Assembly (NCBI GenBank): GCA_020184695.1
Contig: JAANOX010000124.1
Location: 1 to 58,527, forward strand
Reading direction: 5' to 3'
DNA from: Histomonas meleagridis 2922-C6/04-290x
Lineage: Eukaryota > Protista > Parabasalia
Length of the DNA: 58,527 nt
Positions within the stretch are counted from its first letter, which is position 1; every line of letters begins with the position of its first letter. Position numbers and translations under genes: made by a program. Under the pieces are notes generated by a model, which was not told the origin of the DNA, did not search any database, and saw only the letters and a list, made by a program, of their open reading frames with translations. This document shows, one piece after another, positions 13,474 to 34,832 of the stretch.

Positions 13474-13503
13474 TAAAAAAAATGATTTTAAAAAAAAAAT
13501 TTT

Positions 13504-14153: not shown

Positions 14154-14192
14154 AAAATAAAATAATTTTATAAAATCAATTCATTATTATTA

Positions 14193-15287: not shown

Positions 15288-15353
15288 ATAAAAAAATACT
15301 TCTAATTTTTTTAATCTAAATAAAATTGAGATCTAATTTTAAATAATTTTTAT

Positions 15354-16446: not shown

Positions 16447-16580
16447 TTTCAACATCAAATGCTTAACGGTTTTTTAGCGTTACTTTGAAAATGAATGGTT
16501 TATATTTTATATCTCTCACAGTAGGGCCACGTAAGATTATATTAAATTTCTTAAGTATTGAAATCACTTCACTGCAAACA

Positions 16581-17150
16581 ATGCAGGATTTGGCTAACTC
16601 GCATGGGCGCGAATCTAACACTAGCCTAGGCGCGCCCAGAGCTATGAGGAATTCTTTGAGGTATATGTCGGATACTTCGGAATCTGAGCTTGATAGTGAG
16701 TCTTCTTCTCAGTCTGAGTCTGAGGAACCTCCTAGACCCAAAAACTGGAAGTATGAGTTCCCTTATTATTTTGATGAGGGTAACGATGATTCTTCTAGTC
16801 AAGCATTCTCGCAAGAGATGAATGGGGACTATGAAGTTGAATCAATAGTACACTTCAAGGTGGAAAAAGACTCAGAAGGAGTCAACAATGCACTTTGGTG
16901 TGTTTGTTGGAAGAGGGTGAAGGGTCGATTAACACCCTTGAACGATTGGGAACCAACAAAACACCTTAGTTATTGTAAAAACGCGGTAGCCTTCTTTATA
17001 GCTATGCTCAAAGATGGCAGTTCTGAGGAGTATTATCCACCTTCTTCGCGTTTGGCTCCTGCACTGAGAGCCGCTGAAGCCGGTCACTTGTTATTGAGCG
17101 TCAGTTCCAGAGGTACTTTCATATCAATATGTCCTCTCTTCTGGGTATGA
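16581..17150 (+). CDS. Ser/acidic-rich protein with a chromodomain-like segment
   Basis: DYEVESIVHFKV...WCVCWKRVKG...DWEPTKHLSYC. The DNA is visibly more GC-rich than its flanks, and TCACT lies upstream of ATG 16581. Confidence 0.55.
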   Translation: MQDLANSHGRESNTSLGAPRAMRNSLRYMSDTSESELDSESSSQSESEEPPRPKNWKYEFPYYFDEGNDDSSSQAFSQEMNGDYEVESIVHFKVEKDSEGVNNALWCVCWKRVKGRLTPLNDWEPTKHLSYCKNAVAFFIAMLKDGSSEEYYPPSSRLAPALRAAEAGHLLLSVSSRGTFISICPLFWV

Positions 17151-17791
17151 GACAAAAGTATCTAGACATTCAGCGGAAAGAAGACGATTTGGTGTTCTAC
17201 CTGAAGGGCATTGATACTACTCCACGTAGTAAAAAAGCTGAACAACATGCCCTAAGGGTAGTCATCGAAAGACGCTGGAATAATCTAAGTCACGATTCTC
17301 GCGAAAATGTTTACTCGAGAATGGACGAACTAAGGTTCGAATGTCCAGTGGCACATAGATTCATCACCCAGCTCTACTCTCGCGAGCGTCAAATAGAAAG
17401 GTTTCCTGCAATTTTCCCTAAGCCACTTTATGATAGTGTTTATCTTAATAAGAATAACAACAAAGAAGAGGATAAATATCCTCCTAAGAAGGAGTACTTA
17501 GAGGACATTCATCCAGATACTGAGGAAATCTTTCTAAATGACCCCGTTTTAAAGCCGCTAGCCATAATGGCACCACGTCCCAGGGAGGACAATGAACTAG
17601 GTGTACCAAGAACCAGAGCTCCCGATGAGATCGTGTTTGCCAAGAGACACCCAAACCTAAAGGTGGTTGAGCCTTTACTGCGAAAATGCACAACAATGGA
17701 TAAATTCTATAATGATAAATTGGAATCGAATAGAAAATTATGCCTTCGTATATTACATTTAACCTATATCCAGATTATTCGTGCTCAATAA
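17129..17791 (+). CDS. Hypothetical protein, possibly the frameshifted continuation of 16581..17150
   Basis: 220-aa ORF overlapping the previous ORF end in the same GC-rich block. Confidence 0.45.
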   Translation: MSSLLGMRQKYLDIQRKEDDLVFYLKGIDTTPRSKKAEQHALRVVIERRWNNLSHDSRENVYSRMDELRFECPVAHRFITQLYSRERQIERFPAIFPKPLYDSVYLNKNNNKEEDKYPPKKEYLEDIHPDTEEIFLNDPVLKPLAIMAPRPREDNELGVPRTRAPDEIVFAKRHPNLKVVEPLLRKCTTMDKFYNDKLESNRKLCLRILHLTYIQIIRAQ

Positions 17792-18700
17792 TTTATTTTT
17801 CTCTTTCACCCCAGGGGAAAGCAACAAATATTCAATGTGAAACACTCGAAACATTCCGTAATAAATTAAAAAATTATTAAATATTTGTTCTTGGATTCGC
17901 CTTTGATGGTGATAATTTCTATGATTCTTATTATGATTCGTTCTTTGGTCAATATGAATGTGTTGCTGAGCATTACACAGCTTCAATTGTTGAAATTGCA
18001 AAAAGAGTTTTTTTTCGATATATTAGTGATCCCCTTCATATACTTAAACGTTCGAGATATCGTTTACTTATAGACGTACCAATTATCAACATTTTCAGAA
18101 TGCGGGAAGATTTAAATTTATTACCGATTTTAATTAATTACTATAAAATCACAAAAATGCACGATATTCTACCCATTTCTCTATTTTCTATTGATAAAAC
18201 AATTCATTAATGATATATGAGAAACATAATGTTTCAGCATTATTATATTTCTTACCATGGTCTTTATTTATAGAAGCAATATCCAATGACAATATAAATA
18301 TAAGCGAAAGAATTTCGCTATTCGAAATCAATTTTTATTTAATGTTTATATATTATGTATTTATTGTTGTAATACAATTCATTCATTTGTTACATTACTT
18401 ATCTTTTAAAAGATATGAATGCCAAAAAAAGCTTAAATAGATTTACGTCAAATCTTCTCGAACATCAATTCGGATGTATAAGAAATGAAAATGGGTATGT
18501 TCAAAATTCTAATATTAGCGTTAGATACAATATCAACTGATCTAATAATGAATTTATGTAATAACTCATTTGACTAAAAAATAAAAATGATATTCCCACA
18601 TTAGTGACAAGATGGAACTTGCTTTTTCCTTAATTGATTAAAAACTTTTACAATTACAACAATGCATTGAATACTTCATTTACGATGATATTATTCGATA
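17790..18700 (+). pseudogene. P-element/THAP9-like transposase relic
   Basis: Manual translation gives GKATNIQCETLETFRNKLKNY*IFVLGFAFDGD and DPLHILKRSRYRLL (D.xH..K..R motif). Confidence 0.5.
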
Positions 18701-18815
18701 GAATTCTATCAGATATAGATAGATCTGGACCGAAACTTTTAAAATGTATGGATATAATCATCATAAGAAAATATTGAATGCTGTGACTGATCATTTCTAA
18801 AATCATTTGAAATTT

Positions 18816-19093
18816 ATGGGAGCAAAGCGTGGAATTAAGAAAACAAATACAAGATTGACAGTAGAAACACCAAGAAGATCTAATGCAATTAATCAAAGAG
18901 CAAGAAGATGGGTATTCACTTGGAATAACCCAGACAGTTGAAGAGATACTTACAAACATTCTCAAGGGTAAGTTATTTGATAGCAGGCTTAGAGTTCGCG
19001 CCAAGCACTGGAACAAAACATATTCAAGGCTATATTAGGTTTGAAGAGAGAGTGTACGAAAGTACTTTAATATCGGGAATTAATTGTTATTGA
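18816..19093 (+). pseudogene. CRESS-DNA-virus-type Rep (HUH endonuclease) N-terminal fragment
   Basis: RCR motif I RWVFTWNNP (18909..18932). After a frameshift, YLIAGLEFAPSTGTKHIQGYIRF contains motif II HIQG (19019..19030). Motif III and the helicase are absent. Confidence 0.85.
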
Positions 19094-19107
19094 TAGGTAT
19101 ATAATGC

Positions 19108-19184
19108 GGTCGGGACTGATCACGAGGACCCTAGGGGGACTGCCTCCGGCAGTCCCCCTAGGGTCCTCGTGATCAGTCCCGACC
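19108..19184. repeat. Perfect 37-bp-stem hairpin (loop tcc) at the left end of V2
   Basis: ggtcgggactgatcacgaggaccctagggggactgcc-tcc-ggcagtccccctagggtcctcgtgatcagtcccgacc; arms checked base by base. Confidence 0.97.
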
Positions 19185-19594
19185 TTAAGTTTTCACTGGT
19201 AAAATTTCCGGGGTCTTCGGACCCCTCCGGTCGCCTCAGATTCCTCCAATTCCCCGAGTGTGCTCGCTCCGCACGCTACGAAAATCAAAATGATTTTTGT
19301 GAGCCATACAATTCGTCTGAAAATTTGAATGCACATTAAATTTTGAGAGAACGCGAAACTTTTTGATAGGAACGATAGCACTTTTAGCACCACTTTTCGC
19401 ATAAACCTATCAAAAACCTCACATAACCAACACGAATTGTCCCCGGTTATCTTTGGTCGGACATTTATCCTATTCAATTTATCTTTGCCAGGAGGTTAAT
19501 AGACAAAAAACGACGAATATTTTTTGAATACATGGCAAACTTTATTTTAAAATAGTAAATAACTGTTATAAATTATCACTTCATTTTTTTCTTC

Positions 19595-20068
19595 ATGTAT
19601 TGCGAATATTTTTTTTCCATTGCTCAAATTGCAGACAATATCAAAAAAAATAAGGATCTTGATGCTATTGATGTTGCAATATTCTTTGATCCTAAATATA
19701 ATAAAATGGGAAATTACAACAATTTTATTATCAATCCAATTGGGATGATAATAAAACATAGTAATTTATCCGATTTTTATTTTATTCAAGAAGAAATAAT
19801 AGAATTCTTTGACAATCCAATACTAATATCAATTCCAATTACTGAAAATAAGAAACCACCTATAAATCAAAATGTTCATTATTTAGAAATAGACTTATTT
19901 CCATTGAAATGTAAATTTGGACGATGGTATGCGTCATATATCTATGAGTCATATAATGATGAAATTAATCGTACATTATTAGATAATGTAATCGTTAATA
20001 GTCAACATAAAGACAAAACTCATCAATCTGCTTTTGATTTAAAGCAGGATCTTTTCAAGAGTGCCTAA
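19595..20068 (+). CDS. ORF-X, conserved hypothetical protein (157 aa), first gene of the element
   Basis: Intact in both V2 and V3 (31118..31591) with high similarity. Confidence 0.6.
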   Translation: MYCEYFFSIAQIADNIKKNKDLDAIDVAIFFDPKYNKMGNYNNFIINPIGMIIKHSNLSDFYFIQEEIIEFFDNPILISIPITENKKPPINQNVHYLEIDLFPLKCKFGRWYASYIYESYNDEINRTLLDNVIVNSQHKDKTHQSAFDLKQDLFKSA

Positions 20069-20469
20069 AAAATAAAAAAATGATTTTAATTTTTTTATTT
20101 ATTTTGATTCTATAAAAAAACTAGAAGGTGATGAATATATTCTACTATTTTTGTCTTTCAATTGGATAATTTGATAATTTTTTTCAAAATAAATTGAATT
20201 ACTAATAGTTAGTTTTTGGTAACTTTATATACTGGATAGATGGATCTATTAACTCAGTTTCTTTCTCTATCGTTGATGAATTTGATGTCTCATTGTCATA
20301 ATAAGTCTTGATCACCTTCGTGCTATCAGACATTAATAAAAAATGAAAATTTTATTAAATTATAATGAATTTTTGAAACTAAACTATGACAAATGGGACG
20401 CAGGCGTTCTTTAAGGACGCCTGGGATTTGGAATAGTTTCAAAACAATATATATATAAATAATATTTTA

Positions 20470-20739
20470 TTATTTCTTTTGTCCAACTAGCGCATTTGCT
20501 ACACCATCTATAACAGGTGAGAATTTATCTGCTATTTTAATTCCTTTTGCAATAGCACCTGCATGTCCAGGTAAATTTTCAATTCCAGGTATTTTACCTA
20601 CTGTATTTACAACAGGTTTAGCTACTTTATTCCATACATTACCAATAAATCTTCCAACTGGTTTAATAATTTTATCTCTAATCCAAGCACCAGCTTTTTT
20701 AAATCCATTTTTAATTTTGTTCCAAAAACCCCAAGCCAT
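20470..20739 (-). CDS. Amphipathic Trp/Lys-rich peptide paralog 1 (89 aa)
   Basis: MAWGFWNKIKNGFKKAGAWIRDKIIKPVGRFIGNVW...; intact in V2 and V3. Confidence 0.7.
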   Translation of the reverse strand: MAWGFWNKIKNGFKKAGAWIRDKIIKPVGRFIGNVWNKVAKPVVNTVGKIPGIENLPGHAGAIAKGIKIADKFSPVIDGVANALVGQKK

Positions 20740-20773
20740 GAATAATAATAAAAATAAATTATTAATTCTTTTT

Positions 20774-20980
20774 TTATTGATAAAATATAGGATGGATCTT
20801 GTCATTTGCTTCATTTCCTATATTTTTAAATAATGGAATTATTTTATCACCGGTTTCAAATATTTTATCCACAGGTAACTTTTTAAGAGGATTTATTTTT
20901 TTAATGTCTTCTTTATGTTGTTTAGCAAATTCATAACCTTTCACAATATGTGGACTAATTTTTTTAAATCCTTCTTTCAT
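20774..20980 (-). pseudogene. Amphipathic peptide paralog 2, 5'-deleted
   Basis: Matches the 3' part of V3 32299..32571. A ~350-bp deletion relative to V3 lies between two ttcattttt microhomologies. Confidence 0.65.
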
Positions 20981-20989
20981 TTTTTATTA

Positions 20990-22617
20990 ATGTATTATAA
21001 TAATACGCAATCTAAAAATGAACAAGATGATCAAGGTAATGTCGGAGCTTATTTTGATCGTCTTAAAGATTTAATTGCTAAAAATGATGGTACTCGTTCT
21101 TTTATTTTAAGAACTGAAGATTGTCATGATCAAAATGCACCTTTTAATCAATCACAAGAAACTAGATTAAGAATCACTCATGGTGATCATATGGTTTCAC
21201 AAATAACTGAAGGTTTTATTAATTTTAAAATTAGAATAACTGTACAATTATCAAAAGCTATTTCATCTAGTAATTTACAAGATCCTGAGAATTTAGCTAA
21301 AATATTTATAGGTTTTAAGAGTTCTAATCAATTATTAGATCAATTACAAATTATGTCTAATAATATTTCTACTGGTTATCAACAAAATGAATGTTGTCGT
21401 GAAGGTTATTGTTATTCTACAATTAAACCCTATGCTGAAAAGAAAACTAGAAAATATACACATTCTTTATATGAAAATGTTTCAGAATATTCTCAATCTG
21501 TTTGTGGTACTTATGTTGATTTAAATACAATTGCAGATGGAAATAAACATGATATCGAATTTGAAATGAATCTTCCATTTGAAGATATATTAGCTTTACA
21601 AGCATTTGATTTATATCCAAATAGATTAGTTGGTGATATTGAATTAAAGTTTTATGTTAAACAAAATGGTTTAGTTTGGTGTCAAGTAGATCCACGTAAA
21701 ATTAAAGAAGTTAAAGAATTTTTTTAGAAGATTCTTCTATTAATGCTACATTTAATAATTTACCTTTATTTACTCATGGTTTTACTCAAATAGGTAATTC
21801 TGCTAATATAACTACTACATTTAAATGTGATACTGAAACTAATCATACTATTGATACTGCATCTGAGAATGTTTCTTTATATTGTACAGGTTTAACAGTA
21901 GTTTCATGTAAATCTAATATGTTTGGATTTGGAGTTAAAGAAGAAACTTTAAATAAAATAGCTCAAATACTTCAACAACCTGGAGGTTTATTAATTCCTT
22001 CACAACAATTAGATTATAATGCATTTGCATTAGCTGCTACTGAATCTGGTATTCAATCTACTATTAATATGCCTTTATTCAATGTTACAACTATTACAGT
22101 TGTATTTCCAAAAAATGCTAATGATTTTACTTGTTTCGATAATCCTATTTATAATAATGTACAATTAACTATTGCAGGTCAAAATTATCCTGATGAACCT
22201 ATTTCTACTTTAGGTGCAAGATTTTTTTTTTTTTTTTTAATTGCTTCTGATTTAGATGGTGGCATACAATGTACTAAAGAATTCGAAGATTCTTTAACCA
22301 TGGAAAGAAATGCTTCTAATGGTACAAGATATGATAATACATCAAGTGATGCCACCTCTTTTATGCTTAATATACAATGTGAACGTTCGCATGGTGGTTA
22401 CGTATTCGACGGCTTAGACTCTAACGGTCAAAACATCCCGATACAAATTAAGGGGCAACCTATATATACTCAAGCTAACGATACTTATTATAATGTTGAT
22501 GATGCTGGAAATCATCCACCTCCCCCTCAATTATTCATTTGTCGTGATACTTATTTCACATTAGATTTACATAATGGATTGAAATATTATGCTAATGGTA
22601 CTCCTGATGGTTATTAA
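20990..22617 (+). pseudogene. Major capsid protein (V2), frameshift in a T-run at ~21720
   Basis: ORFs 20915..21727 and 21919..22617 are collinear with the V3 MCP. Confidence 0.8.
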
Positions 22618-22688
22618 ATAAAAAATTATTTAAAATTAGATCTCAATTTTATTTATATTAAAAAAAAATTAGAAGTATTTTTTATTAT

Positions 22689-22919
22689 TTACTCAATTTT
22701 CTTGAGTGCTTCTTCAATTTGTTCATACATCGTATGAACCATCTCCGATTTTATATTCGGACCATGAGTCTCGATCCAATCATAAAGAAGATCAAGACTT
22801 CCCGGTACTAAGCATTCCAGGGGTTCTCTAGTGAACTCTCCTGTGCCCCAATGCACCTGGAAAGACACCACCCCATTCTGAATGCGTGACGCAGAGATAC
22901 TTTGAACTGGATATTCCAT
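22689..22919 (-). CDS. Stand-alone chromodomain-like protein (V2, 76 aa)
   Basis: MEYPVQSISASRIQNGVVSFQVHWGTGEFTREPLECL; homolog of 15051..15287. Confidence 0.7.
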   Translation of the reverse strand: MEYPVQSISASRIQNGVVSFQVHWGTGEFTREPLECLVPGSLDLLYDWIETHGPNIKSEMVHTMYEQIEEALKKIE

Positions 22920-23386
22920 TTTTAGATGTGAGGTGATTCTAAATATTTCAATACAGTTAAACTTTTTGATATATTTTTTTATTATTTTGAAACAATACCC
23001 TTTCAAATATTAAGTACTACGGTTAGGAATTAAGAAATATACGATCATAAAATTGAATAGCGATTATGTTGTTGTATGAAAGTTTTGATCACAATGACTT
23101 TTTGAACTGAATAAAGACTGTACTATCAAATATTTTTTGTTTAAATAGTTTACTGATCGTATCCCATGATCTCGAAAATTAATTTATATCTTAAGTTAGT
23201 ACATAACTGTAAAAATTGAATCTATCGTTAATTCAAAAGTGGGAAAATACGATCAAAATCAATTCATTTTTTTAACACTGATCCCCTGTCCATAAAAAAT
23301 TACATAAAAATCATTATACATTTATTCATTCAAATGTGTCACCTTTCGAACGTTAAAAAATATTAATGACATTAAGTTTTTTTTAT

Positions 23387-23781
23387 TTATGAAACATTTT
23401 GAGCTTGATCATTTTGATTTTGAGGCATTATTGAGTTAGCATAATTTTGTAAAACATTTAATTTATTTACATAAGCATTATATTTATTAAAATCATCATT
23501 AAATATTTGATTTAATAATTCCATTTTAGATATTTGATAAGCTTGATCTAATTGTTCAGGTGTTATATTTTGTAAAGGATTCTTTATAGTAGGATGATAT
23601 TTTTCATCTATAAATTTATAAATTTGTTTTTTTAATAAATTATGATATTTATTATACACAGTTACAGTTACTGTTATTACATTTTTATATTTTTAACAAT
23701 AGCAGACGAAGGTTTAATATTAATTGCACTAAAATCACAATCTTTAAATTCTTGTGCAAAGCATGTATAAAGAGCTTCCAT
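23387..23781 (-). pseudogene. Frameshifted copy of the 130-aa hypothetical protein
   Basis: Aligns to 14193..14585. Confidence 0.65.
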
Positions 23782-23830
23782 TAAAAAATAATGAAGTGAC
23801 AAAATGCTTTTTATAAAATTATTTTATTTT

Positions 23831-24637
23831 ATGGAAAACGATATTAATATTGATGCCTTAGATAATATGATTGATTATTGTTTATATAAAAATAAACCTA
23901 AATTAAATGAAGAATTAATAAGTGAAATTCATCCAGAAGTGAATGTACCTTATAATTCTTTAAATATAGCAGTAGGTAGACAAAGAAGTGGGAAAACTCA
24001 ATGTATAATTAGAGAAATTATTAAAATTAGTAATATTAGTCCTAGAACTCATTTATTAATTTATATTAATAAAAAAATGGATTAAAAAATGATCCCACTT
24101 TTGAATCATTAAAACCTTTAATTAAAATCCCAATTTTATATGTAGCTGAAAATCAAGCAGAAGATATAGTTAAAGATATATTAAAATGGAAACAATTTTA
24201 TAATGAAATTAAAAATAATCATTGGGAAAATAAAATAGTAGATAAGCAAATAAATGAATTATTTGAAAAATTATATATTAATAATTTTAATAATTTAACT
24301 TTACATATTATAATATTTTTTTATGATTTTGATAATAGTCCTTTATTTATAAAAAAACCTACTAATTATTTTTAATCAATTATTTACTAAATTAGCTCAT
24401 ATTCAATGTTCTGTATTTTTCGCTGTACAATTTTGGAAATCTTTACCTGCTGAAGTTAAAGCTAATGTAAGTACTATATTTATATTTCCTAATTTCTCTA
24501 AACAACAATTAAGTTATATGATAGCTCAAATACCATTGCCTTATACTAAAGATCGAATTTATTCAGTTTATCAAAAACTGACAGGACATCAAAAAATGAT
24601 CGTCGACGTGAATAATCAAAAAATAAAAATTGAATAA
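23831..24637 (+). pseudogene. A32-like (FtsK/HerA superfamily) genome-packaging ATPase (V2)
   Basis: Walker A AVGRQRSGKT (~23970-23998), a Walker-B-like IIFFYD, and LAHIQCSVFFAVQFWKSLPAEVKAN. Frameshift in an A-run at ~24075. Confidence 0.85.
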
Positions 24638-24668
24638 AAAATGATAAATTAAAATTCATTTTTTTTTA

Positions 24669-25269
24669 ATGTTAAAAGGCCAACAGGGTATAGATAATGA
24701 AATAGCTACTTATCTCAATGTGCTTGGGGTCGATATGACTGCTGCTAAAGAAAACTTAAAACAATGGAGAAATAATCAATCCAATAAAACTATAAATGAT
24801 CTTAATAATCAAATAAAAATATGGCGAACATTAAAAACAACCAATATAGATGAGAATACTTTATGGGACAATATATTGACGTATTTACAAAATATTCAAC
24901 ATCCGTTTTTTGACGAACTAGCTCCATTTCATCCAGAAGTTCTAAAGGATGATGCTTTGGAAGAAAACAGAATAAGAAGATCATTTTTCATCAATGCAAC
25001 CAACAGTAACTATCGAAGACATTAAACCAATTTTGTCTAACGAAATTCCACCATTGGGTTATGAAAAAATGGTTGGATATCCTTCAATTAATGAAGAAAT
25101 AATAATTGATCCAAGGAAATTATTTGGACATAAGTTATTATTTGATCCTCTAAAGAATATCATCGTTCTGAATACTATCAAATTCCATTTTTCAAAAATG
25201 ATACAAAAACAAAGCAAAATATGCTCAAATGAATCCAGAAATATTATGATAACATTAAAGAAACAATAG
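24669..25269 (+). pseudogene. Hypothetical protein, last recognisable gene of V2 (two overlapping ORFs)
   Basis: ORFs 24669..25025 and 24994..25269; TCATT 13 nt upstream of the ATG. Confidence 0.45.
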
Positions 25270-25954
25270 CAGTGATATCAGTTAACTTAATAAATCTAAA
25301 TAATTAAGTAGACACTTAAAAATACGAATGAAAAAATAAAAAAATAAATTAAGAAAAAATCACTTCAGATCATTTTTTTCACTTCACCAAAATTTCAATC
25401 ATTCATAACAATTTATGCAAAAAATATTTTTATTAAACAATCACATTTTTTTGAATAACAAATCATATATTTTTATTTATAAATATATAAAGATCACAGC
25501 CACCACATATAAAAAGTTGCACTAGATTTATTATCGACTAAGTCGATTTTTTCATATATTTTCACTTTTTCTCAAAATTTTTAATAAAAATGATAAAGGA
25601 TAATAGTTTAGAAAATAAGCACATCTAATATGCAACATTACTATATAGGAAATAATCCAAAATTCCATAAAAAGTATGGTCAAAATCAGATCGAAATTTC
25701 GAAACGAGGGTATTTTTGTAATCTCCTACCAATGCTATCCTTAACGTAAAATTATTGTTGAAAAAATATTGCAGGATTTTGAGTTTAGTACCTCTGGTAT
25801 ACCTTGTGAATTTTTTTCGCTTAATTAAGTCATGAATTTATATTATAAATATTATCAAAAACATAAGTAATATGTTTAATGTTCATTAAAAAAATCATGG
25901 TTTTCTTCAAAAATTACAGATCAATAAACGTATAAATAAATTTTATTAAAAAAA

Positions 25955-26444
25955 TTATGTTTCATTCGGAAGAAAAGGTATCCTTTGAACAGATGTGCCA
26001 TTGGACTTTTTCCTGGAATTTGTACGAATAACAAAACAAAAGAGGATCACACAAAGAATATCAATTAGTATAAGTAAGAATAAAATCAACAAAGAGCTTT
26101 GTAAGAGATCGCTTTTTTCATGAAAGTATCCTTGAAATTGTGATAGTCTTGTGATTTCATTTCCATTTGCAAGAAAAACTCTGTTTTGAAGAATATTCTT
26201 AAAACTGCGTTTCGGAATATGGCTAACTTTTAAAAGATTTGGCTTAGCTATTTGAAAATCTGATAGATGTAAGAGAGTAAGGTTTGCTAAAAAAGACATT
26301 TATCATAACCGAAAAGTGTCCGATAATTTTAAATTCAAATAAATTGTCACATTCTGTAAAGTATGTAAAAATTTTTACTTCACATTTGTCAGAATCTGAT
26401 TCAAAAACGGGCACACGCTTTTTAGGTAAAGTGCATAAACCCAA
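25955..26444 (-). CDS. Hypothetical host membrane protein, probably split by a homopolymer frameshift
   Basis: ORFs 26244..26444 and 25955..26299 overlap at a T-run. C-terminal hydrophobic segment LLILFLLILIDILCVILFCFVI is followed by basic residues. Confidence 0.35.
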
Positions 26445-26492
26445 TTGATCAATAGTACGTTAATTTTCCTATCGTGTCAATTTTTTTTTTTC

Positions 26493-29400
26493 ATGAAAAA
26501 TTATGAATTTGATCTAACTTATGAAACAAAAAACTCAGAATTTGAAGCCACCTACGGAGAAGGGGTATTTTTTTCGCAAGAATCATGGGAAATAACCAAT
26601 GAAGATTCGAAAATAGAAAATATTCAAAATACGATTAAAAATCTTCATATTAAAACAGAAGTTATCGAACCATTTCATTCTCATTTTAGAGTGAACAAGG
26701 ATTCATATATTTTAGAGAAATATATCGACAATATCCTTTTTCCAACACCCGAAACAATTAATTGCGTTATTGCTCATTTATCCCACATCGATCAGTTTCC
26801 ATATGATGAGTCTCATTCCGCAAAGTTGCCCTGTATTTTTTCATGGATTGATGCATCAACTATTTTTTCCTCAGAATATACACAATTTGTTCAGAGCTAC
26901 ATTAGAAATAGTTATAAGAATTTTCGAAAAGATCTTAAATGTGTTGTTTTAGTTGGAACTTCACCAGATACAATGAAAAATGTATCATCTCTTCGCCGTG
27001 AATTTCCAGGTCGTCTGCTTTTTCATTACATTGGGTTTGGGTTTCCAAACATCACAAAAGAGGGAATCTGGTGTTACGATCGCCGATATTCTACATTTAC
27101 AACATTTTCTTATTCTAATCTTTTAAGTAACTTAGCTACTCCTTCGTTTTTTATATTCGACTGTAATCATGCTTCTCTGGCTCTTGAGCAAATTTCTAAT
27201 ATAATCTCAAAAACAGATCAATCTCAAGATTGGTATTGTATATGTGCAACTGGACAAGACGAAGAGCTTCCAACAGATCCACGTCTTCCAAAGGACTTCC
27301 TAACATCTATTCTTTTCTCTCCACTCAAGATGGCAGTCATTTGTCATCTTCTCCGATATTATCATATTAACACAACAAGTCCAAAATTTGCTCTTGAGCC
27401 ACCATTCCAACAAATCTGGAATCCAAAATCCACCGAATATCACAAAAATATGCTTTTTCTAAAATCAATTACAGATTCTATTGCTGCCGATTCTCTTCCG
27501 CAAGAATTATATTTAAAGCTTTTTCAAGGCAATAATATGACTTCAGATATTTTTCATCGATATCTTTTTGCACAATTTATTCTTAAGTATTATCATATTA
27601 TTCCACATTCACATCCAGAACTTCCTAATTTATCTACACGTGATCTTTGGCGTCGTTGGATTATCACTTTTGATTCAATGATTATTAATGCAAGTACACC
27701 TCCACTTTTTTATATTAACGAATTTTATACACGCGTATCCGATTCATTTCGAATACTTCTTAACAGTAACAACTTAAATTTCATAACTCCTTATTTTCCA
27801 GTCTTGTTATATTACATGACACTTTTTAATGATGAAAACGAACTTCCCTATGAAATGTTATATGAATACACGTTAAGATCTAATTCAAAAAATATGATCG
27901 TAATTGATTCAATTTTCCCAAATCTTTTTGAAAAACTTGTAAAAACCGATCCAAACACTAAAATATTTTATCCTTTATGTTTTCTTTCTTCATATTTTTT
28001 ATGCTATTGTCCAAGCATAAAAAATAATGTTGATGTTGATGTGTTTATTTTTCCTGAACATATATTTAATCATAAATTTTCTAATGAAACAAGAATTTTA
28101 ATCGCTATTGTTATTGCAAGTGCTGTCACATATAATGAAAGGCTTCAAGAAATTTGTTCTTCCCAATCTTATATGGATTCCATAAAAGAAGAAATAGCTA
28201 TGTCAACACCACAACTTTCTGCATGGATGTTAATGATAGTTCAAAGAACATTTTCATTATTATATTCACCTGATTCAGAATGTTTTGCTAAGAATGGCTT
28301 TCATATTCAATGTGCAATTTGTTTAAGAAGTAAATGCATTGAGTTAAGAGCTGCAGCAATTGCAACTTTATCTTGTTTTATGCGTCCATTTGAATCTAAT
28401 GTTAATTCACAATTATTATTAATGGCAATTATTGGTAATATATCTGACGTTTCATTTTTAGTTCGATTTTGTTTGTTATTACTTGTGAAAAAATTTGTGT
28501 TATCATTTGATCAGTTGGATTTATATGAATTTAATTTCAATGAAAAATCGTATAAAGAAATTAATAAAAAATTATTTGGCTCAGAAGAACTAAAAAATAA
28601 TTTCGAAGTTATCGATAATATTATGGAAAATATGAATTTTACTGACGTTACATGTGAAGTTTCGTTTTATTTATTACATTTCTTTAGTAAAGATCCTCAT
28701 TGTTCTATAAGAAAAGTATCAAATGAAATGATTAAATTCTTAAATATAGAAAAGAGTTCAAACGAAGAATATTTCGAGTTCTCTGAAGAACAAGAAATTA
28801 ATGAATTTTTGGATAATTTAAATCAGAATGAAGCACTTTATAGAATAATGTTATATAATACAATTGAAAATCTGAAAATTAAAGAAAGCGAAACAAAACA
28901 TCATTATTTGTTGGTCGAAAATTCATTTAAAATAAAAAATAAAATCAATTTTATTCGTTTCGATAATAAAAATAATGGAATTGCTTTTAGTGATAATAAA
29001 ACAATTTATTATTTACTCCAAAATGAAATTTATAAACACGAATTCCAAACACGAATCCAAAATATTCAAATAATTTCAATTGACGATAGAAATTATGTAA
29101 CGGTTTTAGCAAGCGACGGTTGTGTTTACGTTTGGGACCCGTTAATTAACACTTTTTATATTACATTTCGATTTAATCCCAAACCAAATGAAAACAAATT
29201 AAATTTCATCTGTTCAACGGATTCAACTGGATTTTATACCATCTCAAATAATGACGTTATTGCACAATGGAATTTAAAGTCTGAACAATTGTTAAATGAA
29301 TATGAATTAAACATTGAAAGTGAAATTCTTTATGTTGAAAAAACAAATGACAAAATTTATATGTCACTTACTAATGGTGATATTTTTGTATTTTGCATAA

Positions 29401-29747
29401 TTAACAAAAAATATGAAATAATAAATCATAATTTACCGATTCATAAGATGATACATATCAATAATTTTTTATATTGTTTAAACAGTGAAAATCAGATTGA
29501 ATTGTTTTATATTGGAAAATGGGAAAATATTTTAGACAATGTTTTCTCATTTGATGTAATTAACAACGATAAATTACTTGTTTGCCAAATTAATAAAGCG
29601 CCTTTCATATGTAATAAAAGCGGAAATGTTTTGTACGAATTCACAGGTGTTCCATCAAATTGTATTTGCGCTTGTGGCGAAAAAGGAAATTTCGCTGCTT
29701 TTGGATGCGATGATGGAACATTGAAAATAACAGAAATTAAAAAATAA
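26493..29747 (+). CDS. Raptor/KOG1-like protein (Raptor-N, HEAT, divergent WD40)
   Basis: RLLFHYIGFGFP..IWCYD, PSFFIFDCNHA and EELPTDPRLPKDFLTSILFSPLK match Raptor N-terminal motifs. HEAT-like ELRAAAIATLS and a beta-rich C-terminus follow. First ATG at 26493. Confidence 0.85.
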   Translation: MKNYEFDLTYETKNSEFEATYGEGVFFSQESWEITNEDSKIENIQNTIKNLHIKTEVIEPFHSHFRVNKDSYILEKYIDNILFPTPETINCVIAHLSHIDQFPYDESHSAKLPCIFSWIDASTIFSSEYTQFVQSYIRNSYKNFRKDLKCVVLVGTSPDTMKNVSSLRREFPGRLLFHYIGFGFPNITKEGIWCYDRRYSTFTTFSYSNLLSNLATPSFFIFDCNHASLALEQISNIISKTDQSQDWYCICATGQDEELPTDPRLPKDFLTSILFSPLKMAVICHLLRYYHINTTSPKFALEPPFQQIWNPKSTEYHKNMLFLKSITDSIAADSLPQELYLKLFQGNNMTSDIFHRYLFAQFILKYYHIIPHSHPELPNLSTRDLWRRWIITFDSMIINASTPPLFYINEFYTRVSDSFRILLNSNNLNFITPYFPVLLYYMTLFNDENELPYEMLYEYTLRSNSKNMIVIDSIFPNLFEKLVKTDPNTKIFYPLCFLSSYFLCYCPSIKNNVDVDVFIFPEHIFNHKFSNETRILIAIVIASAVTYNERLQEICSSQSYMDSIKEEIAMSTPQLSAWMLMIVQRTFSLLYSPDSECFAKNGFHIQCAICLRSKCIELRAAAIATLSCFMRPFESNVNSQLLLMAIIGNISDVSFLVRFCLLLLVKKFVLSFDQLDLYEFNFNEKSYKEINKKLFGSEELKNNFEVIDNIMENMNFTDVTCEVSFYLLHFFSKDPHCSIRKVSNEMIKFLNIEKSSNEEYFEFSEEQEINEFLDNLNQNEALYRIMLYNTIENLKIKESETKHHYLLVENSFKIKNKINFIRFDNKNNGIAFSDNKTIYYLLQNEIYKHEFQTRIQNIQIISIDDRNYVTVLASDGCVYVWDPLINTFYITFRFNPKPNENKLNFICSTDSTGFYTISNNDVIAQWNLKSEQLLNEYELNIESEILYVEKTNDKIYMSLTNGDIFVFCIINKKYEIINHNLPIHKMIHINNFLYCLNSENQIELFYIGKWENILDNVFSFDVINNDKLLVCQINKAPFICNKSGNVLYEFTGVPSNCICACGEKGNFAAFGCDDGTLKITEIKK

Positions 29748-29826
29748 ACTTTTGTTTTGTTCTACATTTTATTTCTCGAGTTGTAACTATTACAAAATAA
29801 AATCAAAATTTTAGTGTAAATATATT

Positions 29827-30444
29827 TTAACAGCATCCGCCTTGGTTCTGGTCGTTTTGTGTTCTGTTGCTAGTATGAAGAACAAGTTGTGGTGGGTTGG
29901 ACTTGAAGTTTCCACGAATTTCGCCTTTCTGAACTTTTGAATGAATAAGATTTCCAAGTCTTATAAATGTTTCCTTAATGTTTGAATCACTTAATGCTGA
30001 CGTTTCAATGTATTCAATTCCATGCCTTTCTGCAAAAAGACTGGCATCAGTGTTGCTAACTTGTCTTTCATTTTCTTGAATGTCACATTTATTTCCAACT
30101 ACAAGAATAGCAGCATTTGGTGATGCTAAGGAGTGAAGGTCATTAAGCCATCCATTGAGGTCATCAAATGAATTCTTATCTATCAATGAAAAAACTAGAA
30201 CAGCACCAACAGCATTTCGGAAATAAGCCTTAGAAATAGACCTGAACTTTTCTTGTCCTGCAGTGTCCCAGATGTTGATTTTAATTGTTTCTTCATCACA
30301 ATTTACCTGAAAAGTATTAAATTCAACACCAATTGTTGGTTGTTTGTCAGCTGAAAAGGTACCTTCTATCAAGCGCTGAATCATAGAGGTTTTCCCGACA
30401 CCAGATGATCCTACAACAACGACTTTATATGTATCAACAGACAT
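29827..30444 (-). CDS. Rab-family small GTPase
   Basis: GSSGVGKT, PTIGVEF, WDTAGQE, NKCD, ETSAL and C-terminal GGCC. ATG at 30444. Confidence 0.96.
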   Translation of the reverse strand: MSVDTYKVVVVGSSGVGKTSMIQRLIEGTFSADKQPTIGVEFNTFQVNCDEETIKINIWDTAGQEKFRSISKAYFRNAVGAVLVFSLIDKNSFDDLNGWLNDLHSLASPNAAILVVGNKCDIQENERQVSNTDASLFAERHGIEYIETSALSDSNIKETFIRLGNLIHSKVQKGEIRGNFKSNPPQLVLHTSNRTQNDQNQGGCC

Positions 30445-30731
30445 CTGACATATCCCGTCAGAGCCCGTTAAAAAAACCAAAATAAACGGTTGAAAATATT
30501 CGACAATTAAAAATAGTATATTTTTGCATTAAAATTTTACTTCAAGAATAATGCATGGACATTACCACACATAAAGACATAAAATAATACATGCAAGCAC
30601 TTCAACGTATTATGAATGGAGCATCAAATCCATTTGCATCAAATGTACTAACAACGGAGGAATTAGAAAGAATTTGTACCTAAACATATCTAAACAATTT
30701 TGTTTCTGTCAGGGGTAAATATATAATGCGA

Positions 30732-30775
30732 TCGGGACAATCCCAGGGACCCTAGGGTCCCTGGGATTGTCCCGA
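30732..30775. repeat. Perfect 44-bp palindrome at the left end of V3
   Basis: tcgggacaatcccagggaccct|agggtccctgggattgtcccga. Confidence 0.97.
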
Positions 30776-31117
30776 CCTTAAGTTTTCACTCGGAAGATTG
30801 AAGGAATCTGTGGCCTCCGGAGGTGCCCATCTACCGAGTGTGCTCGCTCCGCTCGTTACATAAATCAAAATGATTTTTGTATACCCATACAATTCATTCA
30901 ATAAATTGAATACCAATTCAAAATTAAATGAACGCGAAACTTTTTGATAGAAACGATGGCACTTTAACACCACTTTTCACATAAACCTATCAAAAACCTC
31001 ACATAACCAACACGAATCGTCCTCGGTTATGTCTGGCCGGACATTAATCTCATTCAGTGGCAAATATAATTTTGAATAGTAAATAACTGTTATAAATTAT
31101 CACTTCATTTTTTCTTC

Positions 31118-31591
31118 ATGATTGCACATATTTATTCCTTTGCTCAAATTGCGGACAATATCAAAAATAAGGATCTTTCTGCTATTGATGTTGCAATATT
31201 CTTTGATCCTAAATATAATAAAATGCGAAATTACAACAATTTTATTATCAATCCAATTAAGATGATAATAAAACATAGTTATTCTACCGAATTTTATTTT
31301 ATTCAAAGAGAAATAATAGAATTCTTTGACAATCCAATACTAATATCAATTACAATTACTGAAAATAAGAAACCACCTATAAATCAAAATGTTCATTATT
31401 TAGAAATAGACTTATTTCCATTGAAATGTAAATTTGGACGATGGTATGCGTCATATATCTATGAGTCATATAATGATGAAATTAATCGGACATTACTAGA
31501 TAATGTAATCGTTAATAGTCAACATAAAGACAAAACTCATCAATCTGCTTTTGATTTAAAGCAGGATCATTTTCAAGAGTGTCTAAAATAA
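31118..31591 (+). CDS. ORF-X (V3 copy)
   Basis: Homolog of 19595..20068. Confidence 0.6.
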   Translation: MIAHIYSFAQIADNIKNKDLSAIDVAIFFDPKYNKMRNYNNFIINPIKMIIKHSYSTEFYFIQREIIEFFDNPILISITITENKKPPINQNVHYLEIDLFPLKCKFGRWYASYIYESYNDEINRTLLDNVIVNSQHKDKTHQSAFDLKQDHFQECLK

Positions 31592-31609
31592 AAATGATTT
31601 TAATTTTTT

Positions 31610-31843
31610 TTATTTATTTTGATTCCATAAAAAACTAGAAAATGATGAATATATTCTACTATTTTGTCTTTCAATTGGATAATTTGTTAATTTTTCAAAA
31701 TAAATTGAATTACTAATAGTTAGTTTTGGTAACTTTATATACTGGATAGATGGATCTATTAACTCAGATTCTTCTTCTATCGTTGTTGAATTTGATGTCT
31801 CATTGTCATAATAAGTCTTGATCACCTTCGTGCTATCAGACAT
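31610..31843 (-). CDS. Small hypothetical protein (MSDSTKVIKTYYDNET...)
   Basis: TCATT 12 nt upstream; a frameshifted copy lies in V2 (~20085..20333). Confidence 0.45.
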   Translation of the reverse strand: MSDSTKVIKTYYDNETSNSTTIEEESELIDPSIQYIKLPKLTISNSIYFEKLTNYPIERQNSRIYSSFSSFLWNQNK

Positions 31844-31910
31844 TAATAAAAATGAAAATTTTATTAAAATATAATGAATTTTTGAAACTAAACTATGACA
31901 AATGGGACGT

Positions 31911-31931
31911 AGGCGTCCTTTAAGGACGCCT
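31911..31931. promoter_or_regulatory. GC-rich internal palindrome aggcgtcctt-t-aaggacgcct (V2 copy 20401..20423)
   Basis: 10-bp perfect arms in an AT-rich intergenic gap; conserved in V2 with one mismatch. Function unknown. Confidence 0.4.
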
Positions 31932-31993
31932 GGGATTTGACATAGTTTAGTTTCAAAAATTCAAAACAATATATATATATAAATAATATTTTA

Positions 31994-32263
31994 TTATTTC
32001 TTTTGACCAACTAGTGCATTTGCTACACCATCTATAACAGGTGAGAATTTATCTGCTATTTTAATTCCTTTCGCAATAGCACCTGCATGACCAGGTAAAT
32101 TTTCAATTCCAGGTATTTTACCTACTGTATTTACAACAGGTTTAGCTACTTTATTCCGAACATTACCTATGAATCTTCCAACTGGTTTAATAATTTTATC
32201 TCTGATCCAAGCACCAGCTTTTTTAAATCCATTTTTAATTTTGTTCCAAAAACCCCAAGCCAT
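31994..32263 (-). CDS. Amphipathic peptide paralog 1 (V3)
   Basis: MAWGFWNKIKNGFKKAGAWIRDKII... Confidence 0.7.
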   Translation of the reverse strand: MAWGFWNKIKNGFKKAGAWIRDKIIKPVGRFIGNVRNKVAKPVVNTVGKIPGIENLPGHAGAIAKGIKIADKFSPVIDGVANALVGQKK

Positions 32264-32298
32264 AAATAATAATAAAAATAAATTATTAATTCTTTTTT

Positions 32299-32571
32299 TT
32301 ATTGATAAAATATAGGATGGATCTTGTCATTTGCTTCATTTCCTATATTTTTAAATAATGGAATTATTTTATCACCGGTTGCAAATATTTTATCCACAGG
32401 TAACTTTTTAAGAGGTTTTATTTTTTTTATGTCTTCTTTATGTTGTTTAGCAAATTCATAACCTTTCACAATATGTGGACTAATTTTTTTAAATCCTTCT
32501 TTCATTTTTTTAAGTAAAGATCCTATTTTCTTTATACCGTTTTTAAATTTGTTCCACAAACCCCACGCCAT
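32299..32571 (-). CDS. Amphipathic peptide paralog 2 (90 aa)
   Basis: MAWGLWNKFKNGIKKIGSLLKKMKEGFKKIS...; same 5' leader as paralog 1. Confidence 0.68.
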   Translation of the reverse strand: MAWGLWNKFKNGIKKIGSLLKKMKEGFKKISPHIVKGYEFAKQHKEDIKKIKPLKKLPVDKIFATGDKIIPLFKNIGNEANDKIHPIFYQ

Positions 32572-32699
32572 AAATAATAATAAAAATAAATTCATTGTTT
32601 TATTAAATTCTGTAATATTAACTTATTCCTAACTTTTTCTTTTACATCTTTAAATATTATTTTATCATTAGGTTTATATGGTAGAATTCTATTTTTCTT

Positions 32700-32827
32700 A
32701 CCTACATTCCTTTCATGTTCTAACAATTTTTTTCACATTTTTTTGTTGAATTTTTTTCTTGTTGTTCTTTACTTAACTGAAATTTGCTCAAACCTTTTTT
32801 AATTTTATTTCAAAAACCCCAACCCAT
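32700..32827 (-). pseudogene. Amphipathic peptide paralog 3, disrupted
   Basis: Manual reading from ATG 32827 gives MGWGF, a disruption at the conserved Trp, then NKIKKGLSKF. Confidence 0.5.
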
Positions 32828-32862
32828 TTAAAAATTATGAAAAATATTTTTCATTTTTATTA

Positions 32863-34554
32863 ATGTATTATAATAATACGCAATCTATAAATGAACAAGA
32901 TGATCAAGGTAATGTGGGAGCTTATTTTGATCGTCTTAAAGATTTAATTGCTAAAAATGATGGTACTCGTTCTTTTATTTTAAGAACTGAAGATTGTCAT
33001 GATCAAAATGCTTATTTTAATCAATCTCAAGAAACTAGATTAAGAATTACTCATGGTGATCATATGGTTTCACAAATAACTGAAGGTTTTATTAATTTTA
33101 AAATTAGAATAACTGTACAATTATCAAAAGCTATTTCATCTAGTAATTTACAAGATCCTGAGAATTTAGCTAAAATATTTATAGGTTTTAAGAGTTCTAA
33201 TCAATTATTAGATCAATTACAAATTATGTCTAATAATATTTCTACTGGGTATCAACAAAATGAATGTTGTCGTGAAGGTTATTGTTATTCAACAATTAAA
33301 CCCTATGCTGAAAAGATAACTAGAAAATATACACATTCTTTATATGAAAATGTTTCAGAATATTATCAATCTGTTTGTGGTACTTATGTTGATTTAAATA
33401 CAATTGCAGATGGAAATAAACATGATATCGAATTTGAAATGAATCTTCCATTTGAAGATATATTAGCTTTACAAGCATTCGATTTATATCCAAATAGATT
33501 AGTCGGTGATATTGAATTAAAGTTTTATGTTAAACAAAATGGTTTAGTTTGGTGTCAAGTAGATCCACGTAAAATTAAAGAAGTTAAAGAATTTTTAGAA
33601 GATTCTTCTATTAATGCTACATTTAATAATATACCTTTATTTACTCATGGTTTTACTCAAATAGGTAATTCTGCTAATATTACTACTACATTTAAATGTG
33701 ATACTGAAACTAATCATACTATTGATACTGTATCTGAGAATGTTTCTTTATATTATACAGGTTTAACAGTAGTTTCATGTAAATCTAATATGTTTGGATT
33801 TGGAGTTAAAGAAGAAACTTTAAATAAAATAGCTCAAATACTTCAACAACCTGGAGGTTTATTAATTCCTTCACAACAATTAGATTATAATGCTTTTGCT
33901 TTAGCTGCTACTGAATCTGGTATTCAATCTACTATTAATATGCCTTTATTTAATGTTACAACTATTACAGTTGTATTTCCAAAACATGCTAATGATTATA
34001 CTTGTTTCGATAATCCTATTTATAATAATGTACAATTAACTATTGCAGGTCAAAATTATCCTGATGAACCTATTTCTACTTTAGGTGCAAGATTTTTACA
34101 ATATCAATTAGTTGCTTCTGATTTAGATGATAGTATACAATGTACTAAAGAATTTGAAGATTCTTTAACTATGGATAGAAATGCTTCAAATGGTACAAGA
34201 TATAATAATACATTAAGTGATGCTACTTCTTTTATGCTTAATATACAATGTGAACGCTCACGTGGTGGTTACGTATTTGATGGCTTAGATTCTAATGGAC
34301 AAAATATCCCGATACAAATTAAGGGGCAACCTATTTATACACTAGCTAATGATACTTATTATAATGTTGATGATACTGGAAATCATCCACCTCTTCCACA
34401 ATTATTCATTTGTCGTGATACTTATTTCACATTAGATTTACACAACGGATTGAAATATTATGCTAATGGAACATTAGATGGATATCAAATAAAAAGTAAT
34501 TATTTAAAAAAATCATCATATTATCATAAATTAAATAAACGTGAAATGATTTAA
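32863..34554 (+). CDS. Putative double-jelly-roll major capsid protein (V3), intact; stop read through by TAA>CAA
   Basis: 563-aa beta-strand-rich protein, the largest ORF of a module that also has an A32-like ATPase. From memory it resembles capsid proteins of metamonad Polinton-like elements. The V1/V2 copies end at GTPDGY*. Fold not verified. Confidence 0.75.
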   Translation: MYYNNTQSINEQDDQGNVGAYFDRLKDLIAKNDGTRSFILRTEDCHDQNAYFNQSQETRLRITHGDHMVSQITEGFINFKIRITVQLSKAISSSNLQDPENLAKIFIGFKSSNQLLDQLQIMSNNISTGYQQNECCREGYCYSTIKPYAEKITRKYTHSLYENVSEYYQSVCGTYVDLNTIADGNKHDIEFEMNLPFEDILALQAFDLYPNRLVGDIELKFYVKQNGLVWCQVDPRKIKEVKEFLEDSSINATFNNIPLFTHGFTQIGNSANITTTFKCDTETNHTIDTVSENVSLYYTGLTVVSCKSNMFGFGVKEETLNKIAQILQQPGGLLIPSQQLDYNAFALAATESGIQSTINMPLFNVTTITVVFPKHANDYTCFDNPIYNNVQLTIAGQNYPDEPISTLGARFLQYQLVASDLDDSIQCTKEFEDSLTMDRNASNGTRYNNTLSDATSFMLNIQCERSRGGYVFDGLDSNGQNIPIQIKGQPIYTLANDTYYNVDDTGNHPPLPQLFICRDTYFTLDLHNGLKYYANGTLDGYQIKSNYLKKSSYYHKLNKREMI

Positions 34555-34631
34555 AAAACATCATAATAGCTTTAATCAAAACATTATATTTGTATAGTTT
34601 ATAATGATGTACACTGAATTCATTTGTTCAA

Positions 34632-34832
34632 ATGGAAAGAGAGTACCCTGTCTCATTCATTCTCGACCACTATTTCCGCATGGAAGGTACATACGAAGTC
34701 CTTTACTTCGTATTGCTATGGGAAGATGGATCAATCACAGCCGAGCCAAAAGAATGTCTGAACAATTGTGATGATCTTCTAAACATTTATATTAAACAAA
34801 CTAATCAGACTCAACAAATGGGAACAGGTTGA
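34632..34832 (+). CDS. Stand-alone chromodomain-like protein, second type (66 aa)
   Basis: EYPVSFILDHYF...YFVLLWEDGSITAEPKECLNNCDDLLNIY; TCATT 12 nt upstream. Confidence 0.65.
   Translation: MEREYPVSFILDHYFRMEGTYEVLYFVLLWEDGSITAEPKECLNNCDDLLNIYIKQTNQTQQMGTG

Follow-up and report, generated by a model that had tools for sequence, protein, structure and literature searches.

Histomonas meleagridis, a parasite of poultry, has in its genome an endogenous virus near whose ends lies a long palindrome, here called P1, whose two arms differ from one copy of the element to the next and, in every full copy, remain perfectly complementary to each other. The best explanation of this pattern, to which we assign a probability of about 0.6, is that the DNA of one arm templates that of the other, in a hairpin acting in cis within the terminal inverted repeat (TIR) of the element. 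Our window, a term used here for the whole stretch of DNA analysed, is the entire contig JAANOX010000124.1 of assembly GCA_020184695.1 (58,527 nucleotides, nt), and the same locus is found in assembly GCA_020186115.1. By self-BLAST, the repeat headed by the palindromes occurs three times in this window, and these occurrences, V1, V2 and V3, represent decayed members of a multi-copy endogenous virus of polinton-like type, approximately 12.5 kb in length. The palindromes form the outermost structured module of TIRs of about 484 bp, and they are subterminal rather than terminal. The copies and their P1 palindromes are the following:

19092-25077, plus strand: V2, the left end and about 6 kb of the element, truncated on its right side (by self-BLAST; homology to other H. 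meleagridis copies reaches 25077).
30714-35213, plus strand: V3, the left end, the first genes and an intact capsid gene; the remainder is missing or rearranged, and a MULE-like transposase open reading frame (ORF) follows.
11534-16458, minus strand: V1, an inverted partial copy with capsid and ATPase genes and further decayed genes, without an end repeat.
19108-19184, no strand: P1 of V2, palindromic without mismatch over 77 bp (37-nt arms, loop TCC).
30730-30777, no strand: P1 of V3, with a perfect 44-bp core at 30732-30775 and no loop.

Much of what had been predicted for these two palindromes is borne out by measurement. The 37-bp stem described in V2 is present, 100% complementary around a 3-nt loop, and the palindrome with 22-bp arms described in V3 is indeed perfect over 44 bp; on the full arm register, V3 additionally has an A.C mismatch at its second outermost pair (30731/30776) and a further G-C pair outside the core. 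The original prediction also held that substitutions and one indel are mirrored on both arms, which is true of the four substitutions and the single indel that separate the arms of V2 and V3, the A.C pair being the one unmirrored change. As had been said, the centre of V3 is missing between two CCCTAGGG units, but the loss amounts to 27 nt rather than about 33: it is a symmetric deletion between two 8-nt units, and the rest of the 33-nt difference in length between V2 and V3 consists of the mirrored 1-nt indel and the unpaired outer position. A deletion between 8-nt repeats fits the instability of hairpin or cruciform centres, in line with the cruciform origin that had been proposed for it. 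The flanks shared by the two palindromes are restricted to them, with TATATAATGCG found in the window at 19098 and 30720 only and a 22-nt right flank at 19176 and 30769 only. Chance cannot give rise to P1, since perfect arms reached no more than 14 nt when the window was block-shuffled 40 times, as opposed to the 37 nt observed. Furthermore, collapse of the V3 centre by the assembler is unlikely, because the second, independent assembly has the same V3 palindrome, letter for letter, despite a difference of 1.7% over the surrounding 19.5 kb.

Five further loci were reached via annotated H. meleagridis capsid fragments, which brings the sample of P1 to six ends from one species, four of them full copies: V2, L063 and both ends of the complete copy L062. 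When arm-to-arm identity is scored against copy-to-copy identity, as had been suggested, the full copies reach 100% within themselves and 81-95% between each other. They contain no arm-arm mismatch and differ pairwise at 2-7 of the 37 arm positions, always in mirrored fashion. Across the alignment, 10 of the 37 pairs carry changes in both arms and none a change in one arm alone; all 148 of 148 cells are paired, without any wobble (G.T). This mirrored pattern was reached by none of 500 shuffles, and sliding the register by one column brings pairing down to about 50%. Identity between copies is 81-95% in the P1 arms versus 82-88% in the adjacent non-palindromic repeat, which is to say that the arms drift about as fast as their surroundings yet stay complementary. 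Transversions are involved at 7 of the 10 variable positions, and the left and right TIRs of L062, otherwise 98% identical, differ by a mirrored dinucleotide change in P1. Given the absence of wobble or one-sided states and the predominance of transversions, copying between arms would account for the pattern better than stepwise compensation, and the inclusion among the mirrored changes of transversions and of one adjacent double change suggests that such copying took place in a folded state. The pattern thus speaks for symmetry of the DNA itself and tells against stepwise evolution of an RNA stem. Read from the end inward, the loop is NCC in 5/5 copies that keep one, a small sample; the flip/flop loop isomers that had been proposed as a check do not occur among these five loops, all of which have the same orientation.

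The anatomy of the repeat is best seen in L062, a complete copy of about 12.5 kb (7222-19719 of that locus) with TIRs of 484 bp that share 97.9% identity. In both TIRs, P1 is a perfect 77-bp palindrome spanning nt 17-93. The palindromes had been predicted to be terminal; they are not, because a conserved 16-nt end lies outside them. From the end inward, the TIR consists of these 16 conserved nt, P1, a 9-nt spacer, a second palindrome (P2), a small A/T hairpin and the promoter region of the outermost gene, and the right TIR of L062 stops exactly at the start codon of that gene. The 16-nt end, GGTAGG followed by TATATAATGC, is non-palindromic and in L062 adjoins AAAACG on both sides, a 6-bp target-site duplication seen in this one complete copy only, which points to what would be integrase-type insertion of a duplex with defined ends. 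The end motif of V2 matches that of L062, and in the alignment of the six ends the 16 nt carry one substitution in V2 and two in V3:

19092-19107, plus strand: the outer 16 nt of the V2 terminal repeat, GATAGG followed by TATATAATGC (from the alignment of six ends).

The symmetry of P1 stops sharply at 37 bp, where the two flanks are different from each other and each is conserved. As a single strand, the first 260 nt fold very strongly (z-scores of -14 to -17). L062 has genes for a capsid protein, an ATPase-like protein, small membrane proteins and a fibre-like protein, and in addition a candidate integrase of the RNase-H fold; the last is a 234-aa ORF (L062:15611-16315) that matches rve at E 0.025, below threshold, and whose 601-aa homologue from gut metagenomes has a faint RNase-H-like match. 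With the 1011-aa polymerase of metagenomic relatives as tblastn query, no protein-primed polymerase was found in L062-L066 or the window, and Pfam and PHROG scans of the L062 ORFs returned no HUH nickase, telomere resolvase or junction resolvase, although divergent enzymes could escape such scans. No protease was identified among the element genes, nor, with the small ORFs left unmodelled, any candidate for a penton protein.

P2 offers a comparison on the very same molecules. Complete P2, as found in other copies, is an imperfect palindrome of about 86 nt with a TTCG loop, and each of the two copies in the window retains a part of it:

19194-19260, no strand: P2 remnant of V2, lacking 20 nt of the left arm and holding the TTCG-loop hairpin at 19209-19224.
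30787-30840, no strand: P2 remnant of V3, with the left arm kept and 33 nt of the right arm lost.

The small hairpin of V2, with arms GGGGTC and GACCCC, had been picked out from the start; it is real, and it is what remains of P2, bounded in V2 by the inverted 7-mers CACT(C)GG and CCGAGTG. We also considered that the segment enclosed by these 7-nt inverted repeats, downstream of P1, might be inverted between V2 and V3, and rejected this, as complete copies show the P2 palindrome, of which the two have lost opposite arms. Pairing in P2 stands at 90%, with three one-sided changes, G.T-type included, and seven pairs with unpaired cells. P2 behaves as an ordinary selected or decaying stem on the same molecules on which P1 is perfect. 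Decay of the whole end module is seen elsewhere: L066 carries a decayed P1 with one arm mismatch and an asymmetric central deletion, and in L064 the 16-nt end is kept, but the entire GC-rich module, about 290 nt, has been lost between two ATGC microhomologies.

How could arm copying work? P1 would fold on itself when the repeat is single-stranded or when it is extruded as a cruciform, and a change in one arm would then be removed, or copied to the other arm, by hairpin-templated repair or by polymerase template switching. In this way P1 could drift at about the local neutral rate while its symmetry stayed perfect. Copying might take place mainly in the element's own replicative phase, a timing favoured by the unmirrored decay in L066 and V3. 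After insertion P1 would act like any long palindrome, losing its centre (V3, L066) or disappearing with the whole module (L064). The weakest step of this scheme is the proposal that P1 may be a cis-acting end structure that aids end replication or processing in a lineage without the protein-primed polymerase of its gut relatives.

Several points weigh against arm copying as we propose it. The ends are only six, all from one species and only four of them complete, and no replicative intermediate was seen. P2, a mere 9 nt from P1, tolerates mismatches, and generic hairpin repair fails to explain why P1 alone is perfect. The two TIRs of L062, otherwise 98% identical, nonetheless differ by the mirrored dinucleotide change; if they were identical at insertion, the copying would have happened in the host chromosome and not during viral replication. 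Moreover, the 16-nt tail outside P1 would block simple self-priming from a 3' end, and L064 persists without the GC-rich module altogether. Finally, no metagenomic contig has both ends, which leaves the polymerase-bearing gut relatives unrepresented among the ends compared.

The original prediction attributed the copying of the arms to hairpin-telomere or rolling-hairpin replication. The copying itself is supported by co-evolution without wobble or one-sided states, but the anatomy does not support the strict form of such replication. In that form, P1 would be the unfolded terminal hairpin or the concatemer junction of a linear genome, with each arm templated by the other in every cycle. This would account for perfect arms and fully mirrored changes, for the very strong fold-back potential of the ends and for an element that has no protein-primed polymerase, and hairpin priming is proposed in the text of a preprint on similar elements (bioRxiv 10.64898/2026.07.28.741278). 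However, P1 begins at nt 17, behind a conserved non-palindromic end that abuts the target-site duplication; its limit is sharp, with flanks that differ and are conserved; the loops of all five copies share one orientation and the TTCG loop of P2 is likewise never inverted; no nickase or resolvase emerged from the scans of the complete copy; and the Rep-like piece next to V2, described below, is outside the element. We thus regard strict hairpin replication as improbable, while a looser, hairpin-assisted end function is possible. Ordinary compensatory evolution would, on the other hand, dispense with arm copying and invoke selection for a stable stem, whether of DNA, as a cruciform or hairpin, or of RNA, as a hairpin of a repeat transcript. 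Conserved blocks (the outer 8 nt and CCCTAGGG) do alternate with variable blocks, as they do in selected structures, and P2 has just the mixture expected of selected stems, one-sided changes of G.T type among them. For P1 we nevertheless find this explanation unlikely: with ten pairs changed on both sides, 0/148 cells are one-sided or wobble, most changes are transversions that are obliged to pass through a full mismatch, the mirrored change of two adjacent bases between nearly identical TIRs is too fast for two-step selection, and the arms evolve about as fast as an unconstrained flank.

A process of the host chromosome is a further rival. Here, long palindromes of this AT-rich genome would be symmetrised in place, while the chromosome replicates, by template switching or cruciform-associated repair, independently of the life cycle of the element. 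The mirrored dinucleotide difference between the two TIRs of a single inserted copy (L062) is what such a process would leave, and a third, unrelated perfect palindrome at 38270-38328, identical in both assemblies, belongs to another repeat family. Yet inserted copies decay in unmirrored fashion, as seen in the mismatch and asymmetric deletion of L066 and the outer mismatch of V3; P2 is imperfect in the same copies; and the third palindrome has a single available homologue, truncated where its locus stops. We accordingly consider a purely chromosomal process to be rather unlikely. It is hardly credible, in turn, that P1 stems from assembly, polishing or fold-back sequencing. Nanopore reads can yield fold-back chimeras, and multi-copy elements invite cross-mapping during polishing; cross-mapping, however, blurs the differences between copies and creates no copy-specific mirrored variants. 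P1 sits at the homologous position of the repeat in five loci on four contigs from two assemblies, the agreement of these assemblies over V3 has been mentioned above, and a palindrome of 44-77 bp is spanned by single short reads. Both assemblies were built from nanopore plus Illumina data and have homologous scaffolds between them (PMC9615429). Arm-to-arm copying within a hairpin of the TIR therefore remains our preferred account of P1.

The element itself is recognisable from its genes, of which the following are relevant here:

19595-20068, plus strand: 157-aa ORF of V2, the first gene inside the repeat.
20990-22617, plus strand: major capsid protein gene of V2, with one frameshift and one in-frame stop.
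23804-24636, plus strand: packaging-ATPase-like gene of V2, with two frameshifts.
32863-34554, plus strand: major capsid protein gene of V3, intact, 563 aa, with a predicted double jelly-roll fold.

The 563-aa ORF of V3 has hundreds of homologues and no match among Pfam families or PDB sequences. An AlphaFold2 model built from a deep alignment reaches a pLDDT of 90.9, and Foldseek relates it with probability 1.00 to the double jelly-roll capsid proteins of iridovirus, Sputnik, PBCV-1, mavirus and adintovirus; on the strength of this model, the product is predicted to be a double jelly-roll major capsid protein. The ATPase-like protein is conserved at 266-267 aa and shows a P-loop in translation, with no Pfam or PHROG family above threshold. 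In V1 the capsid gene lacks its 5' third and carries one frameshift and three stops, while the ATPase gene has two frameshifts; V3 has lost its ATPase gene together with the remainder of the element, and the window contains no right terminal repeat of V2. The 157-aa ORF evolves near-neutrally between V2 and V3, and it bears a weak similarity to a 130-148-aa protein of the gut relatives; a homologue search came back empty. By contrast, dN/dS between V2 and V3 is 0.17 for the N-terminal piece of the capsid protein and 0.03 for a small membrane protein. These ratios indicate that V2 and V3 diverged while functional, largely under purifying selection, and they are therefore separate insertions of once-active relatives and not a decaying segmental duplication.

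Some further features of the copies deserve mention. Small chromodomain-like ORFs are found in all three (15051-15287, 22689-23006 and 34632-34832), with a GC content of about 55% against 27% around them; the one in V3 is on the strand opposite to those in V1 and V2. Between the first ORF and the small membrane-protein genes there is a small, conserved GC-rich hairpin with arms of 10-11 nt and a 1-nt loop whose central base varies by copy (31911-31931 in the window, 9035-9057 in L063, 8816-8836 in L064 and 16902-16924 in L066). At about 20000-21000, V2 differs from L061 by an indel of some 330 nt between assemblies, which resembles the extra small membrane-protein gene copy of V3 and could be either strain variation or a repeat mis-assembly. 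The public annotation gives gene status to a fragment of the broken capsid gene of V2.

Outside the species, the closest relatives of the capsid protein are 72-77% identical and come from contigs of human gut metagenomes (L001-L059), which are gene-dense, AT-rich and about 14 kb long. Besides a protein-primed family B polymerase (PF03175), these relatives encode a fibre-like protein, a 267-aa ATPase-like protein and small, lysine-rich membrane proteins. Gut contigs and window alike have an initiator-like TCATTTT motif 6-12 nt upstream of nearly every start codon, and no ribosome-binding sites precede the genes, a combination that fits a parabasalid host of the gut relatives, plausibly Dientamoeba. 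We rejected an origin as bacterial viruses, which some bacterial source names and one scaffold (L014, 69 kb) that links the element with bacterial genes might suggest, on the grounds of the same two features. Several of the relatives are named as proteins of Bacilli genome bins. The family is very abundant, with single proteins present on at least 1000 contigs, and we found no publication that describes it. What emerges is an abundant family of gut-metagenome viruses that has been mis-binned into bacterial genome bins and is now tied to parabasalid hosts. Searches for the end module in this material were negative: none of the 50 metagenomic loci yielded GC-rich perfect palindromes or terminal repeats, a result of little weight since no contig among them has both ends, and a resemblance by eye between the end region of the window and the gut contigs was not upheld as nucleotide similarity. 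Likewise, the end motif had no match in viral contigs or JGI metagenomes, the capsid protein none in IMG/VR, and exact look-ups of the element ORFs of the window returned no match.

The remainder of the window is AT-rich eukaryotic DNA (about 27% GC) that carries a Raptor-like gene, a Rab GTPase, an HlyIII-family protein and a Na/Ca exchanger; the Raptor-like ORF (1100 aa, 26445-29747) is without gene annotation in both public records. Scans of the window for tRNA genes and Rfam families gave no match. Immediately beside V2 lies a relic of a different virus:

18801-19090, plus strand: Rep-like fossil of a circular single-stranded DNA (ssDNA) virus (translations; Pfam PF02407, E 3.5e-4).

Its motifs I and II are in different frames, separated by one frameshift, and it stops 1 nt short of the terminal sequence of V2, which places it outside the element. 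We considered it as a part of the element, and as a possible rolling-hairpin nickase, and rejected both, as it lies beyond the end, is not continued on the far side of V2 and has no counterpart beside the ends of V3 and L062. Fossils of circular ssDNA viruses, mostly kirkovirus-like, have already been catalogued in the H. meleagridis genome (PMC9615429). The contig is also rich in mobile elements. The third perfect palindrome (38270-38328) has 28-nt arms, a TTC loop and 36% GC, and its sequence is the same in the second assembly; its repeat family is unrelated and adjoins an rve-type transposase ORF (38648-39316, minus strand), and a homologous left arm with three differences occurs at the cut end of L065. 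In place of the 5' third of the V1 capsid gene stands a GC-rich block (16459-18800, up to 54%) with two overlapping ORFs (16485-17150 and 17129-17791), one of which has a faint chromodomain match. Other mobile features are a MULE/SWIM-like transposase ORF with weak matches downstream of V3 (35794-37416, plus strand), a tyrosine-recombinase ORF close to the left end of the contig (1247-2053, minus strand; PF00589, E 1e-16) and an inverted repeat pair (7337-8096 and 57676-58493, 94-96% identity) that holds a 181-aa ORF without a family match.

The ends described here share traits with several known systems. Parvovirus ends are GC-rich fold-back palindromes that serve rolling-hairpin replication, and their centres are often lost in integrated or cloned copies. 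GC-rich end palindromes kept as pairing partners, together with loss of the centre, recall the present case; unlike parvoviruses, our element has no HUH nickase, no palindrome at a 3' extremity and no flip/flop, and it is a 12.5-kb duplex with a target-site duplication. In the closed hairpin telomeres of poxviruses, asfarviruses, chloroviruses and the telRL site of phage N15, the axis of symmetry falls on the genome's physical terminus, or where two ends are joined. There, too, the arms of a perfect palindrome mirror each other, both being derived from one duplex, whereas here the flanks of P1 are the 16-nt end and the interior of the repeat, and the Pfam and PHROG scans revealed no resolvase. 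The stem-loop at the origin of circular ssDNA viruses differs in that P1 has loops of 0-3 nt on stems of 22-37 bp, and not a short stem whose loop carries a nonanucleotide nick site. Linear replicons of Streptomyces have telomeres in which several imperfect palindromes with conserved loop motifs are packed into the first 150-200 nt of the TIR and are served by dedicated terminal proteins; it is proposed that these palindromes fold within the 3' overhang, which is single-stranded, and assist replication of the end. The tight packing of several palindromes near the end of a TIR is similar here, although the Streptomyces system is bacterial and relies on terminal proteins and imperfect palindromes. 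Correction of quasipalindromes by template switching, and revision of long palindromes by breakage at the centre, are in turn general mutational processes. They account for mirrored multi-base changes and central deletions without any telomere mechanism, and they leave the contrast between perfect P1 and imperfect P2 unexplained.

A further comparison is with the Polintons or Mavericks, including those of Trichomonas; the target-site duplication of Polintons is 6 bp long (PMC10045372). With these our element has in common TIRs of hundreds of bp, a 6-bp target-site duplication, a double jelly-roll capsid, an ATPase-like gene and multi-copy integration in a parabasalid genome; it differs in having no protein-primed polymerase, a length of only about 12.5 kb and a weak match to the rve integrase (E 0.025). 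P1 bears on the way in which polinton-like viruses and virophages that lack a protein-primed polymerase replicate their linear ends. The joint change of its two arms, within a repeat whose sequence is otherwise free to drift, is evidence from sequence that some process acts on the ends while these are folded and single-stranded, and mirrored versus unmirrored changes, along with loop orientation, provide a simple, countable signature that could be applied to any genome with many copies.

The closest parallel, drawn here from the text of a preprint rather than from its sequences, is with the endogenous virophages and polinton-like viruses of Halocafeteria seosinensis, which carry palindromes inside their TIRs, preferentially in elements without a protein-primed polymerase, and for which hairpin priming is proposed (bioRxiv 10.64898/2026.07.28.741278). 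By analogy with these elements, presence of the palindrome may go together with absence of the polymerase. A bolder extension, which we put forward as a possibility of low probability, is that the symmetry of P1 could be the footprint of a hairpin-dependent copying or processing of ends that replaced protein priming and evolved independently in the polymerase-less polinton-like viruses of a parabasalid and of a stramenopile, one arm being resynthesised from the other in each cycle despite the 16-nt offset from the integrase-defined end. The two systems are not alike in every respect: the host supergroup is different, Parabasalia in our case, and the capsid families are unrelated; the palindrome described in the preprint is at the extremity, whereas P1 lies 16 nt inside the end and is followed by a second long palindrome; and mirrored co-variation between copies is not reported in the text that we draw on. 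What they share are palindromes of tens of nt, placed in the repeats of integrated, capsid-encoding elements that have target-site duplications and no protein-primed polymerase.

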